47,902 nt of DNA from NCBI RefSeq assembly GCF_001194135.2, contig NC_068991.1:6812783-6860684 (forward strand). Reading direction: 5' to 3'. The first letter of the stretch is position 1. Each line of letters opens with the position of its first letter. This document shows, piece after piece, positions 31,030 to 35,762 of this stretch. The translations under genes and the position numbers were made by a program. The notes under the pieces are model-generated. The model worked only from the letters and a program-made list of their open reading frames with translations, had not been told where the DNA came from and did no database searches. This DNA comes from Octopus bimaculoides (lineage: Eukaryota).

Positions 31030-32942
31030 TTAATCTTCTGAATCCTCATCACACATAAGCTCTTGTAACTCATAATCCTCATATGTCTCAGCAACAAAAT
31101 AAGGATCACAAGCATAAGTAGCATGCAGTGTAACATTTTCTAAATTTTCTCTAGATTCCGGAGACAATTTGATAAAAAATTTAGGTCCTTCAAGATTTCT
31201 TACAGTCACTTCTGATGTGCCTTCAGCTAACAATGTATCTGGATCCAAACCATCTCCCTCTGTTAGCATATTGTACTTTGATAACTTAATATGAACTTTG
31301 CCACACATACCAGTGGCGATAATTGTAATATTCCCAACTAGCTTTGGATAAATAAAATCAAAGACTGGGTTTGCTTCAACTGACACTCTAATACCTGAGA
31401 TTGTTTTGCCAAATGACAATCTTTGAATATGTTTCTCTAGATCACATGGTTTAATTCCTGTAACTTCAAAAGCTTTAATAAAAGGGGTTAGATCTTTGCC
31501 AAGGTCATAGGCAACCTTCAACATATCACAAGCCCCAGAAATGAAGTCTGTATAATAGTGCCAATATATTGTATTGGCAATGAGGAAAACTTGGTAAGTT
31601 TCTTTTATATCCATTTTTAATTCATGTACAATGTAGTAAAAAATAAAATTATAAATCCCACTTCCATAATGAACGTTCATATTTGCAGTGAAATTATCAA
31701 CATGACTTACAGATTCATTGTCTAAGGAGGGGTTTGCCATGTATCTCAATGCACCCTCTTCTTTAATGACATCGAAGCCAACAAACCAGTCAATCTCACT
31801 CATATAAGCTTCAGTGACTTCTCCTGTTATATCAGAAAACGCCTCATTTATGGATCCAGACTGGTCTTTGTAAAGCAATCCAGAGTGTTGTTCTGTGAAG
31901 CCATGAGCAAGTTCATGTCCAATTACATCTGCAACTACAAGAGGATAAACGTTTGTATCGCCATCACCAAATGAGCAATATTCCCCATCCCAAAATGCGT
32001 TTTCATAATCTATCCCATAATGAACACGCAAGATTGCTTGTTTGTTTAGTATTGAAGAATTAAACCATTCCTGAAACATCTGAGATATCATGCTACCATA
32101 ATAGAAGGCATCAAGTGCTGGTGATATGGCCGTATTAACACTGTCATTAAAACCAACATCACAAAGATAATAGATAGGATCTGTGCCATGAAAATCTTCA
32201 CTGTACCTGTTTTGCATGTCTATTACTTTTACATAATTATTTTCAAGAAAACACATTTCACCAATCTGAGTCACAAAAGCTTTGTGATTTTTCTCACTAA
32301 ATTTGTATATTCCTGATTTTTCATTACCACCAGAACCAGTCAGTACTCTGGAAATGGTATCTAAATTATTATATTTCAGCAGTATTTCTCCAGTGTTACC
32401 ATCAATAACAAATGTAGGTCGTTTAATAACTTCTTCATTTTCTATTCGATAATTTATATGGTATGCTAGTCGAGATTTGTCATTTTCATCCAGGAAAATC
32501 ATAATTTTGTATTCTGGCTGGATGCTCTTTGCATAAATTTCATCTCCTTCTGCTTTAAAAGCTATATCGAAGACATCTAATTTTGAAAGCTTTGGTTCTG
32601 CATTTGTGATATCATCTTCAATTCCTTGAATAAACGTTCCTGTTGCATCACCAGTCAAATGTCCATCTTTATCTTGTGTAACGGTTAACGAAGCATCAAA
32701 AACAGGAACACCCAAGAACTTCTCTTGTAAGCGTAAAATTTCTGTGCCTTCAGCTGTTTTGATACGGTTTGACTCTTCAACTTCTTCATACTCCTTCAAA
32801 CCAAGAAGATCTCTGACTGTTACTTCAGTTTTATCTAAATGACGCCGATGAAATGGAGATGAAGGAAGATAAATCATTCTCCTTGCTCTTTCATGAGCAT
32901 CAACACGACGAGCCGCATCAGATGTCTTTATCAGTGACAAAC
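31030..32942 (-). CDS. Exon 2 (main coding exon) of a secreted M4-family zinc metalloprotease (thermolysin/LasB elastase/vibriolysin-like prepro-enzyme)
   Basis: Uninterrupted 636-codon ORF. Motifs (ORF-track numbering): HELAH 342-346, GSINEAFSD with E366, ENAFWDG, FGDG..VYPLV, LRYMANPS, NVHYGSG. FTP-like (LRLQEKFLGVPVFD) and PepSY-like (RPTFVIDGNTGEILLKY) propeptide segments align by eye with P. aeruginosa LasB and Vibrio proteases. The frame is closed by TAA just upstream, and a pyrimidine-rich acceptor TGTTTTCATTGTTTAG|GT lies at 32943/32942. Confidence 0.96.
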
Positions 32943-33574
32943 CTAAACAATGAAAACATTACAATTATGAATAACAGAAACATCAGGATTTTTTTCTTCA
33001 AGACTGAGACTAATTTTTTGACAATACATTCACACACAGTTTATGCCTATATTTGTTTTAAAAAGAATTAAATTCCTTAACAATTTAAATATAATTATAA
33101 GCTCATAATCTATGATATATTGCTCATAAAAAAATACATCATTCTAACCTCTTTTAGTCTGGACAAATTTGTCCAAATATAAATTCAATGCATTTCAGTA
33201 ATTAATTTAATATTTGATGAAATGGGGTAGTGGTTTGTTAAGTGAATGGGTGTGGGTTTCCTTTTAGTTAAACAACAACCAACATCTGAAAGCTACAAGT
33301 TAACTGAGGTCTGTGCATTTTTGGTGTAGGATAATTTTGTTGATTTGAATGCAGTCTGGTTATATTCAATGTTCCATACAAGGACTTTTGTATTTGTTTC
33401 ATAAATTAGGGGATGGCTACTAACATTAAGCTTAAGGATTATATAATGTACAAGTATAAAGAAAGAATTAAAGAAAGAAGGACTCATTATATTGAATGTT
33501 ATCGATAACATTGGGTGTAAATAGGGGGTGCTGCAATTCAGCAGTGCCTCCACACGAGCAGCCACTGTCTTGCA

Positions 33575-34749
33575 CTTAGTGACGTGGACAAGAAAGAGGT
33601 GTGGAAAAGTTACTACGAGAAACTGTTGAATGTAGAGAAAGAATGGGTTAAAGTGAGTCTCCCAACAGAAGGGCCGACTATCCTAGTGGACAGCAGTGTG
33701 GTAGATAAGACAATTGAAAACGTATTAACCAGGAAAGCCCCTGGCCCATCCGGAATCACAGCTGAGATGCTCAAAATATCCGGAATGGTAAAATATGGGC
33801 TAGTCACCCGCATAGTTGACTAAGTCATTCAGGAAGGTGTAATAGCTAGTGACTGGTGTAGCAGCATTATTATTAGCTGATACAAGATTATGGGTGCTGC
33901 TTTAGATAGAAACAAATAGAGAGGCGGTGAGCTGGCAGAAACGTTAGGTAGATGGTCTGTTCGATTTGTAGGAAAGGTGTAGGCAGGAACTCCTTACGGT
34001 GTACCCAGTGCAAGCTATGGACACTGAAGAGGTGCAGTGGATTAATCGGAAGGTTATCAGAGAAGATAGTTTTCGTTTGTGGAAGATGCACAGGATCCAT
34101 AAAAACTTTAGAGACTCGGGAAATTGATTCTCTCAAATGCCTTGGTTGCTCATTAGAGGTAGTAGATAATTTCTGCTACTTAGGGGACCAAATTAATAGT
34201 AGGGGAGGATGCACAGAATGTGTGATAGCTAGAAAATGAATAGGATGGAGAAAATTCAGAGACCTGTTACCTCTGTTGGGCACGAAAGGTTTCTGTCTCA
34301 AAGTGAAAGGAAGATTGCATGAAGCATGTATACAGACAGCAATTCAACATATGAGTGAAACGTGGGCCCTGAATGCAGAGGACATGCGATGGTTAGAAAG
34401 GAATAAGATTAGTATACTCCGCTGGGTGTGTAATGTAAGTGTACGTTTTCGACAGAGTGCTGGTGTTTTGAAAGAGAAGTTAGACATAAGAGGAATTAGT
34501 TGCTGAATGCAAGAGAGAAGATTGCGCTGGTTTGGTCATGTGATGCGGATGAGTGTCGAGAGTTCCATAAAGAAGTGCCGATCTCTCAAAGTAGAAGGAC
34601 CACGTGGAAGCGAAAGACCCAAGAAGACATGTGAAGGACTGAAGAATGAACTCAAGACGGTGAACGTTTCAGGCGAGATGGCAAAGGACCGAGACACCTG
34701 GCGCTTTGCTGCACTCGAGAAAACCCGTACTCCGCAGCAGAAGTGTTAA
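33575..34749 (+). mobile_element. Decayed RTE-clade LINE ORF2 fragment inside the protease intron (antisense to the gene)
   Basis: KAPGPSGITAEMLK (pre-RT), DW..SII...YK..G.ALDRN..RG (RT start), FCYLGD (RT motif 7), ETWAL, RRLRWFGHVMRM...GRP-like C-terminus. Multiple stops and a large internal deletion. Confidence 0.9.
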
Positions 34750-35092
34750 GACCGGTCCCCCTGGTGAAGCACATGGTGCCTGTTGTCCCCTTAACACTCA
34801 TTCGCCTTGCAGTGAAGTTGGTACAACATATATATCTCAGATTTCCAAGAAACTCAAACAGATAAGAATGGATATCATTTGTACAGGTGAAAGAAGCCAG
34901 GTGACTGACATTTACAGTAACTATTCCCAGAGTGTGACAGCAAGAAATAATCCCTGAAAATCAGTGGCTGGTGCCCATTAATCTTTTTTTACATCAAGTC
35001 TATTGAGTCAGTTGAAAGGTGATGGTGGGACCTCACCAAGACTGCAGAGGAATGAATCGACAAAGCAGGTGAAGTTGACAAGTTGTTCACAA

Positions 35093-35240
35093 GAGAAAGA
35101 GAGAGAGAGAGAGAGAGAGAGAGAGAGAGAGAGAGAGAGAGAGAGAGAGAGAGAGAGAGAGAGAGAGAGAGAGAGAGAGAGAGAGAGAGAGAAACAGACA
35201 GAGACAGAGAGAGAGACACAGAGAGACACAGAGAGACAGA
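35093..35240. repeat. (GA)n microsatellite in the intron
   Basis: Directly visible. Confidence 0.95.
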
Positions 35241-35292
35241 GATAGTTGTTCTGACACAATCAGCTGTGAAGTAATTGTATAACTATGTAGTT

Positions 35293-35430
35293 GAGACTGG
35301 GAAACGGCACTTTGGGCTTCTGCCTTCTACTATAGCCCCTGCCCAACCAATGCCTTGCAGGAAAACATAAAGGCGGTGCTCCAGCATGGCCACAGTCAAA
35401 TGACTGAAACAAGTAAAAGAATAAAATAAT
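35293..35430 (+). mobile_element. Internally deleted SINE family B in the intron
   Basis: CTTCTACTATAGCC joined to AAAGGCGGTGCTCCAGCATGGCCACAGTCAAATGACTGAAACAAGTAAAAG. Confidence 0.75.
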
Positions 35431-35713
35431 AACCAATGAATAAACTGCAATGGTTAAGACTCATTCTTGTGCTGATGGATTCTAACTAAGGCAGCATCAT
35501 TGTGACAGATCTCATCACAAAGGAGAAACAGTTGAGGAGGATTACAAGATTGGTCAGGCAGAGAATAGTAGAGGTGCTACAATAGTCCTTAAGGCAAATC
35601 TAGCTTCTATAAAGTATTTTATGTAAGAAATGAATCAGTTGTCATCACAAGAAAATACAAAGATAAAATGCATGTAAACTTAAACAATGAAAAAATCTTG
35701 AAAATATACTTAC

Positions 35714-35762
35714 TGCCAAATAGGAGTTGCCACGAATAAAATATAACCAACAAATTCCTCAT
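35714..35762 (-). CDS. Predicted exon 1 of the M4 protease, encoding most of the signal peptide (MRNLLVIFYSWQLLFG + A)
   Basis: 49-nt exon with ATG at 35762 in GCAACCATG context, ending at a consensus donor GTAAGT (35713-35708). Phase 1 matches the acceptor (A|GT = Ser) and joins in frame to give MRNLLVIFYSWQLLFGSLSLIKTSDA-ARRV, a plausible cleavable signal peptide. Confidence 0.85.

Follow-up and report, generated by a model that had tools for sequence, protein, structure and literature searches.

A two-exon gene for a secreted metalloprotease of bacterial type lies on the minus strand of a 47,902-nucleotide (nt) stretch of the Octopus bimaculoides genome (NC_068991.1, positions 6,812,783 to 6,860,684; the whole stretch is called the window below), and a phase-1 spliceosomal intron splits its signal peptide. 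Taken together, the evidence makes it very probable that this is a nuclear gene with two coding exons, that it encodes a secreted prepro-protease of peptidase family M4, and that it goes back to one ancient transfer and carries an old intron in its leader. By comparison with other mollusc sequences, the leader intron is to be regarded as an old and ordinary feature of a domesticated gene.

Structure of the gene

The sole long clean open reading frame (ORF) in the window is that of the protease, at 31030..32940 on the minus strand (636 amino acids (aa)). It opens at a TTG (32940), an in-frame TAA lies 7 codons further upstream (32961..32959) with zero ATG between the two, and the first internal methionine is ORF residue 22. 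No ATG follows the upstream stop, and residues 27-38 (ARRVDAHERARR) form a stretch that molluscs have conserved; translation must therefore begin in an exon further upstream. The start codon of this exon is the ATG at 35762..35760 on the minus strand, in the context GCAACCATG (minus-strand reading). Its residues 1-17 gave a 100% match in tblastn, are the same as the N-terminus of the public protein model P0001 and are conserved in O. sinensis. The acceptor reads ...ttttcattgtttAG, with its AG at 32944..32943, and exon 2 opens with GT TTG TCA at 32942. The intron is of the U2 type (|GTAAGTAT ... aatgttttcattgtttAG|), with GT...AG ends, a GTRAGT-like donor and a pyrimidine tract. Splicing restores one frame and gives the product MRNLLVIFYSWQLLFG-S-LSLIKTSDAARRVD..., of 653 aa, whose N-terminus is MRNLLVIFYSWQLLFGSLSLIKTSDAARRVD.... 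Exon 1 codes for the n-region and the greater part of the hydrophobic core of the signal peptide, and exon 2 for the rest of the signal peptide, followed by the propeptide, the M4 catalytic domains and a C-terminal domain.

This structure had been proposed in an earlier note made from the sequence alone. The 49-nt exon, its GTAAGT donor, the matching phase, the acceptor and the intron of ~2.77 kb were all found base for base where the note had placed them, and so was the ORF that starts at the TTG after an in-frame stop. From end to end the joined product of 653 aa matches P0001 without a difference (NCBI 'virulence metalloprotease [Octopus bimaculoides]', also in UniRef and EukProt), and the annotated coding sequence (CDS) in GCA_001194135.2 spans 4733 nt, which equals 31030..35762. 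The gene model is already in the public annotation with exactly the same structure, and the exon is not a hidden one as the note had called it. As the identical model exists, the prediction from sequence was right yet adds nothing to the public annotation.

Conservation of the leader intron in molluscs

A phase-1 intron was found in the leader in 7/7 mapped relatives, namely O. sinensis, Argonauta, the O. bimaculoides paralogue P0142, the relative represented by genomic sequence L013 (probably a cephalopod), Pecten, Pomacea and Haliotis. Exon 1 of O. sinensis is likewise of 49 nt and has the same ttggca|GTAAGTAT donor, with an intron of 4724 nt; in Argonauta hians exon 1 measures 46 nt and the intron 2090 nt. 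The paralogue P0142, which is 42% identical and lies on another chromosome, has an exon 1 of 49 nt followed by 4122 nt of intron. The corresponding lengths are 28 nt and 542 nt in Pecten maximus, 40 nt and 201 nt in Pomacea canaliculata, and 31 nt and 12,136 nt in Haliotis rufescens. At the locus of a further paralogue (P0002) an intact 49-nt copy of exon 1 with a GTAAGT donor is present and has been overlooked by the public model. The split codon lies 9-12 codons upstream of the A-x-R-V-D/N motif in 6/7 relatives, and exactly 10 in the cephalopod orthologues and in the present gene; in P0142 the A-x-R-V motif is too diverged for the intron to be positioned against it. The exon junctions are without a conserved AG|G or G|G context. 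Conservation with O. sinensis extends over the region of exon 1 and the final ~370 nt of the intron, but not over the repeat-filled middle of the intron. The occurrence of the same exon, phase and donor in orthologues and paralogues indicates that the exon is real beyond chance.

Splicing at the homologous junction was seen in mRNA-like sequences of a relative. Three such contigs, resembling messenger RNA (mRNA; Logan contigs L007-L009, 2.8-2.9 kb, from three sequencing runs) carry the whole CDS uninterrupted across the junction. Their source is a relative with 49% protein identity, probably another cephalopod. In addition, a 143-kb genomic contig of a related species, at 84% nucleotide identity, has the homologous junction with a tttttAG acceptor. 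The mRNA-like contigs thus provide cross-species transcript support.

The protein model P0009, called on this 143-kb contig, was considered as an intronless orthologue, which would imply intron loss or a retrogene. This was rejected, as its N-terminus, MRNKTTSIFSIFLD, arose because a prokaryote-style gene caller read on through the polypyrimidine tract of the intron (...tctattttctccatctttttAG|AC TTG). The mRNA-like contigs cease to be similar exactly at the AG of this read-through (L010 3001..3040; L013 10040/10041). The true exon 1 of the P0009 gene lies 9.6 kb upstream (ATG TTA TTT ... TTA TAC T|GTGAGT, 46 nt, phase 1; L013 380..425). It is preceded by sequence similar to the 5′ untranslated region (5′UTR) of L008 and, when joined to exon 2, gives MLFPQLSIFVYVVLYYLLLVGRIQCAYRVDAH, colinear with P0008.

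The presence of the intron in three mollusc classes means that the event was neither recent nor specific to the octopus. The leader intron would predate the split of cephalopods, gastropods and bivalves and would have been kept since, as far as its age can be judged from the distribution among these classes.

Some further observations were made on the relatives. Contigs L007, L008 and L009 encode an identical 650-aa protein and have three different 5′ leaders, which diverge a few bases upstream of the ATG; these may be alternative 5′UTR exons or artefacts of assembly ends. The leader of L008 alone matches the related genome (L013 291..344). Pomacea canaliculata has two extra introns in the propeptide, of phase 1 after residue 100 and of phase 0 after residue 167 (L005 coordinates 3502/4492 and 4691/5780), and intron gain therefore continued in at least one lineage. 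The P0002 model (723 aa, ~51.45 Mb on the same chromosome; locus L012 10001..19349) looks chimeric, with an acceptor that abuts an N gap and a propeptide that is partly duplicated. The exon-1 copy at this locus (L012 11213..11261) lies inside its 'intron 1', and a second region, similar to the surroundings of exon 1, at 27349..27516 suggests a tandem cluster. As P0009 and P0002 illustrate, prokaryote-style gene callers and gap-spanning models give false N-termini in the mollusc M4 family.

The secretion leader

As the earlier note had expected, the N-terminus of the joined product looks like a signal peptide. By heuristic rules there is a charged n-region (R2), an uncharged h-region of 19 residues (3-21) and small residues at -3 and -1 of the predicted cleavage site (S24, D, A26 at -3 to -1). 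This layout is common to all orthologues examined. The intron falls inside the leader, so that its last 10 codons (split codon included) and the cleavage site are in exon 2. The hydrophobic core is mostly in exon 1 in octopods; in scallop, abalone and apple snail it is split about half and half.

On these features the following course of expression can be proposed. Transcription would start at a TATA-type promoter ~50-80 nt upstream of the ATG, and exon 1 would give the 5′UTR, the start codon and the first 16 1/3 codons, that is, the n-region and most of the core. The U2-type phase-1 GT-AG intron of 2771 nt would be spliced out between the two halves of the leader. Exon 2 would then supply the remaining 10 leader codons with the signal-peptidase site TSDA|ARRVD, an inhibitory propeptide of FTP/PepSY type, the HExxH catalytic domains and a C-terminal domain that, among named M4 proteases, is confined to molluscs.

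The earlier note had called a signal-peptide exon followed by a phase-1 intron the classic layout of animal secreted proteins. An excess of phase-1 introns near signal-peptide cleavage sites in such proteins is documented (PMC1626468), which supports this in part; the octopus intron, however, lies within the leader. The likeness to such introns (Tordai & Patthy 2004; Vibranovski et al.; reviewed in PMC1626468) consists in the phase and in a position within ~10 codons of the predicted cleavage site. The differences are that the octopus intron is inside the hydrophobic core and not at or after the cleavage site, that its junction is not G|G or AG|G, and that the downstream exon is a complete prepro-enzyme of bacterial type and not a shuffled phase 1-1 module.

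The encoded protease

The gene product is predicted to be a secreted M4 prepro-zinc-metalloprotease of the pseudolysin/vibriolysin-like kind. Its membership in family M4 follows from two M4 domains above the curated cutoffs (Table 1) together with the presence of the zinc site and the catalytic His. The bacterial type of the coding body, which the earlier note had recognised, is borne out by the M4 Pfam domains, the alignment to pro-elastase and the bacterial homologues. In Peptidase_M4_C the segment GSINEAFSD contains the third zinc ligand Glu (E383) and NVHYGSG contains the conserved His (H441); both are invariant, and four Cys are invariant in the family alignment. HELAH and these two segments line up with the corresponding motifs of pro-elastase. 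As HELAH, the Glu of NEAFSD, the conserved His and the four Cys are all invariant, the enzyme looks catalytically competent, as predicted from its residues. The propeptide region aligns to residues 45-200 of pro-elastase, and PepSY gave a weak Pfam match of 17 bits, below the cutoff of 24. The closest solved structure is Pseudomonas pro-elastase (8cr3, E 6e-82 over ORF residues 40-499); other solved relatives are the vibriolysin-like protease Mcp02 and a Legionella-type zinc protease.

Bacterial homologues carry PPC, PKD or P-domains in the C-terminal position, where the octopus protein has another domain. A profile search found 42 representatives of it in a 50%-clustered library. All named carriers in which it stands beside an M4 protease are molluscan (Haliotis, Pomacea), and weaker matches go to repeat proteins, among them an Ig-like repeat protein of Pseudomonas putida.

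Origin of the gene

Homologue searches covered 5.8 billion proteins and gave 1697 matches (E<=1e-10) and 2633 matches (E<=1e-20), and the best 120 of each were inspected. Among the matches listed, the named eukaryotic ones are all molluscs except one entry flagged UNVERIFIED_CONTAM; the other names are bacterial. The molluscs are cephalopods (Octopus, three species, and Argonauta), gastropods (several species of Haliotis, and Pomacea) and bivalves (Pecten, Mizuhopecten, Ylistrum, Tegillarca, Ruditapes). Next come M4 enzymes of gammaproteobacteria and related bacteria (Vibrio, Shewanella, Hahella, Microbulbifer, Lysobacter and others). Identity is 77-79% to the other Octopus species as against 32-40% to the bacterial proteins. 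In a neighbour-joining tree (unrooted; 46 selected sequences, 589 columns, 100 bootstraps) the named molluscs were separated from the named bacteria in 100/100 bootstraps, and the mollusc part approximately follows the classes.

Bacterial contamination or mis-assembly might be suspected, as the closest solved structures and many of the matches are bacterial M4 enzymes (Vibrio, Shewanella, Pseudomonas). The locus is nevertheless physically integrated in the host genome. The window is on chromosome CM046611.1 (80.9 Mb) of GCA_001194135.2, with which it is 100% identical over the stretches compared. The G+C content of the ORF (0.34-0.35) equals that of its flanks, the window ranging from ~0.34 to 0.44 outside gaps. 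Host repeats fill the spliceosomal intron and flank the gene. Moreover, orthologues with the same intron lie on chromosome-scale scaffolds of at least 5 mollusc genera, and the identities given above are far higher to Octopus species than to bacteria. Contamination is excluded by these several independent lines, and only a negligible chance was left to it. The earlier note had reached the same conclusion while taking the intron as the strongest evidence for it; since the host repeats, the 80.9-Mb chromosome, the host-like G+C and the mollusc orthologues are at least as strong, that ranking does not hold, though the intron is in itself good evidence.

The restriction of the named eukaryotic matches to molluscs, the 100/100 separation and the bacterial character of the M4 family make a single old transfer from bacteria to molluscs the best reading. 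The most likely history is that an early mollusc acquired, once, an M4 gene of gammaproteobacterial type; both the direction of the transfer and its single occurrence are presumed. Vertical inheritance, by which an M4 peptidase of the animal ancestor was lost except in molluscs, is improbable. It could draw on the unrooted tree, which does not give the direction of transfer, and on relatives that may belong to other phyla. Opposed to it are the almost purely molluscan list of named eukaryotes, the similarity to gammaproteobacterial enzymes (32-40% identity), which runs through the whole prepro-enzyme and takes in the cleavage-site motif, and the near-intronless structure, which is atypical of ancient animal genes. 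In addition, the M4 family is described as almost exclusively bacterial (PMC7851659).

Several observations weigh against the two-exon gene and the transferred origin proposed here. As a check on chance, all ATG...phase-1-GT candidates in the 14.9 kb upstream were scored by a crude donor matrix; 223 candidate first exons were counted, and the true exon was only 4th, because the exonic side of its donor (GCA|) is weak though the intronic side is perfect. Transcript support is cross-species only, and the public gene model may be partly ab initio. Hydrophobicity of the leader is moderate, with a best 10-residue Kyte-Doolittle window of 1.70, below that of the orthologues, and the signal peptide is judged heuristically. 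Outside the cephalopods the intron offset is 9, 11 and 12 codons as against 10, and could point to parallel gain or intron sliding, both of which are unlikely. The bacterial sequences of the leader alignment (A4) were picked for carrying the cleavage-site motif, which most Vibrio matches are without. The unrooted tree of selected sequences shows mollusc monophyly and not nesting inside a bacterial clade, and the relatives P0021, P0025, P0056 and P0029 could stem from other phyla.

The idea that the exon is singled out by sequence alone was rejected, as three other candidates outscore it on the donor. The donor matrix being indecisive, the case for the exon therefore rests on the comparative evidence. 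The ATG exon might instead be a chance match or predictor artefact, the real transcript starting in the 'intron' or using another upstream exon; the middling donor score and the cross-species nature of the transcript support would allow this. It is, however, very improbable. Orthologues and paralogues have kept the exon with its phase and its donor, the sequence around exon 1 stands out as conserved with O. sinensis beside an intron middle that is not conserved, and the homologous junction is spliced in the mRNA-like contigs of a relative. A start within the intron would also lose the leader and the conserved residues 27-38, since there is no in-frame ATG before ORF residue 22.

Two of the relatives, P0029 and P0184 (JGI/Logan contigs of ~2.3 kb), have a PPC domain (PF04151) and stand on the bacterial side of the neighbour-joining tree. 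The N-terminus of P0029 is mollusc-like (...EAQA|ARRVDAK...KRSL...). The two may be intermediates or a separate eukaryotic lineage.

Origin of the leader and its intron

Directly after the signal peptide, homologues from Lysobacter, Undibacterium and metagenomes have A-x-A|A-x-R-V-D-L-H, and a Shewanella homologue has A-H-A|A-N-R-V-Y, in which Tyr replaces Asp. The molluscs have ...A|A-R-R-V-D-A-H, and in the MAFFT alignment with bacteria (A4) A26, A27 and V30 are invariant and R29 nearly so. As the cleavage dipeptide and the propeptide start encoded in exon 2 align with the bacterial motif, the bacterial block seems to have reached into the leader. Taken at face value, the alignment suggests that the bacterial gene passed on both the cleavage site and the beginning of the propeptide, and the bacterial frame would have been kept at least from the signal-peptide cleavage site onward. 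A leader wholly derived from the host is unlikely in view of this motif. For the first half of the leader two sources are conceivable: the former bacterial leader, separated from the rest when an intron was gained, or a 5′ exon captured from the host. Of what the earlier note had offered, a bacterial coding block placed behind a host leader or one that gained its intron in the leader, the wholly host-derived leader is not supported, exon 2 having a bacterial-like motif, and capture of half a leader and intron gain are left with equal weight.

In the case of capture, the bacterial gene would have been spliced to a host 5′ exon that gave it a promoter, an ATG and the start of a leader, with a cryptic acceptor in the region of the bacterial signal peptide. 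This is a serious possibility, somewhat short of an even chance. It is consistent with the conserved promoter-proximal sequence and the ATG borne by exon 1, with a nearly complete hydrophobic core encoded by octopod exon 1 alone (LLVIFYSWQLLF), and with n-regions that are short, weakly charged and eukaryote-like, the bacterial ones being rich in K/R. The junctions also are without the AG|G proto-splice context that simple insertion might predict. However, the last 9-12 leader codons and the cleavage site are in exon 2 and run into the bacterial-type A|A-x-R-V-D, which leaves no more than half of the leader to a host origin. No other host gene with a homologue of exon 1 was found, though no search was aimed at one, and the divergence of leader sequences is too rapid for their ancestry to be followed over such a time.

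Intron gain, to which we assign the same probability, would mean that the whole bacterial signal peptide was kept and that a spliceosomal intron was inserted later in its core in the mollusc stem. Sec-type leaders work in the endoplasmic reticulum (ER). The leader and propeptide are colinear with those of bacterial homologues and the leader is of similar length (20-29 residues). A gene that was once intronless would be expected to have few introns, and there is a single one in most members, with further gains seen in Pomacea. Intron gain after transfer from bacteria to eukaryotes is documented for other genes (PMC3584928). On the other hand, the proto-splice signature is absent at the junctions, exon 1 has no detectable similarity to bacterial n- and h-regions (none is expected after so long), and the acquisition of a promoter is left unexplained.

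Comparison with known systems

The octopus protease resembles the pseudolysin/vibriolysin subfamily (8cr3) in its predicted signal peptide and FTP/PepSY-type propeptide, in its M4 and M4_C domains, HExxH motif, NEAFSD Glu and His, and in the A|A-x-R-V-D propeptide start, which is found in several bacterial members. It differs in that the gene is animal and nuclear, has a spliceosomal leader intron, is 32-40% identical and has a ~140-aa domain in place of the bacterial PPC, PKD or P-domain. The mollusc genes annotated as 'elastase-like' or 'neutral protease-like' (O. sinensis, O. vulgaris, Argonauta hians, Haliotis spp., Pomacea canaliculata, Pecten maximus, Mizuhopecten, Tegillarca, Ruditapes) are orthologues or paralogues with the same domain order. 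They have in common the motif after the cleavage site and a phase-1 leader intron in every one mapped; they differ in the length of exon 1 (28-49 nt) and of the intron (201-12,136 nt), and the P0002 model is without exon 1. A bacterial alpha-amylase in Basidiomycetes (PMC3584928) is likewise a bacterial-type gene in a nuclear genome with host-like composition and one or more spliceosomal introns. In the molluscs, by contrast, intron gain has been minimal over a very long time, with one in most lineages, and that one in the leader.

It is possible, with slightly less than an even chance, that the mollusc 'elastase-like' M4 genes represent a pan-molluscan domestication of a gammaproteobacterial secreted protease, which pre-dated the split of the classes, kept its cleavage site and acquired a single stable phase-1 intron. 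If true, this would be a clean and datable example of a bacterial secretion signal rebuilt for eukaryotic splicing and secretion. No paper describing horizontal transfer of mollusc M4 genes was found in the literature searched. In the main text of a compendium of metazoan transfers (PMC13342648) there is no mention of octopus, metalloprotease or peptidase. The locus neatly illustrates how a secreted protease of bacterial type has turned into a normal animal gene with one old leader intron, and it could be used to study the ways in which genes gain promoters, introns and ER targeting after transfer. It also draws attention to an animal protease family with several Octopus paralogues.

Features of the locus

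Table 1. Features of the protease gene and its surroundings (positions within the window)
Feature	Position	Strand	Basis or remarks
TATA-like ATAAATA, 82 nt upstream of ATG	35838..35844	-	putative core promoter of exon 1
TGTGAATATT motif just 5′ of the start codon	35771..35780	-	alignment A2
Exon 1, coding part, 49 nt	35714..35762	-	codons 1-16 (MRNLLVIFYSWQLLFG) and base 1 of codon 17; 3′ end ...TTTGGCA
5′ splice site GTAAGT	35708..35713	-	intronic side perfect consensus; exonic side GCA| weak
Intron, GT-AG, phase 1, 2771 nt	32943..35713	-	exact-match splice mapping
Short interspersed repeat inside intron	35368..35426	-	recurs at 20120..20179 (95% identity) and ~37512..37563 (92%)
(CT)n/(GA)n microsatellite inside intron	35090..35245		sequence and comparison with O. 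sinensis
Degenerate ORF fragments inside intron, including ...RRLRWFGHVMRM...	33584..34957	+	ORF list
3′ splice site, pyrimidine-rich tract aatgttttcattgtttAG	32943..32965	-	position and phase as in O. sinensis and Argonauta
Exon 2 (1910 nt in the splice mapping)	31030..32942	-	last two bases of codon 17 to stop (31030..31032)
Predicted signal-peptidase site A26 (GCG)|A27 (GCT), TSDA|ARRVDA	32911..32916	-	heuristic (-3,-1) rule
FTP propeptide motif, ORF residues 57-96	32653..32772	-	Pfam PF07504, 25.6 bits, cutoff 21
Peptidase_M4, ORF residues 213-350	31891..32304	-	PF01447, 89.7 bits (cutoff 22.4), E 3e-25
Zinc motif HELAH	31903..31917	-	H359, E360, H363 invariant in alignment A3
Peptidase_M4_C helical domain, ORF residues 353-495	31456..31884	-	PF02868, 93.3 bits (cutoff 24.4), E 2e-26
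C-terminal domain, ~140 aa	31033..31452	-	profile search; position of bacterial PPC domain
First AATAAA after stop (36 nt)	30988..30993	-	candidate poly(A) signal; further ones start at 30958 and 30868

Upstream sequence elements

The block CTGACTA[CT]ATAAATAAGAGTCAG around the TATA-like element is conserved in O. sinensis. The TGTGAATATT motif does not vary between O. bimaculoides, O. sinensis and Argonauta; it is possibly an element of the 5′UTR or a promoter-proximal one. An upstream block at 35836..35900 on the minus strand (GTGATTACGGAG...CTCACGTAAT...CTGACTACATAAATAAGAGTCAG) is largely conserved with O. sinensis; within it are the TATA-like box and the inverted pair ATTACG/CGTAAT, both of them possible promoter elements. 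At ~35824..35816 there is a small upstream ORF, ATG ATG TAA.

Intron content and surrounding sequence

The antisense ORFs in the intron (33584..34957, plus strand) gave no significant Pfam match. We take them to resemble the C-terminal end of ORF2 of a retrotransposon without long terminal repeats, from the motif RRLRWFGHV. This stretch is not conserved in the intron of O. sinensis. Within the 47.9-kb window no other M4 protease fragments were detected by tblastn, and the locus is single-copy there.

The window is a gapped draft with more than 15 runs of N, abundant (CA)n, (CT)n, (A)n and (T)n microsatellites, and interspersed repeats. Most of the long ORFs listed for it are artefacts of N runs or microsatellites. 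The gene is bracketed by two copies of a repeat in the same orientation, 81% identical, at 29848..29927 and 41732..41811. Minus-strand ORFs at these repeats (29736..29918 and 41368..41802) begin with MSK.L.F.LLQSTQL..M.NPATD, and the copies are presumably those of a transposable element.

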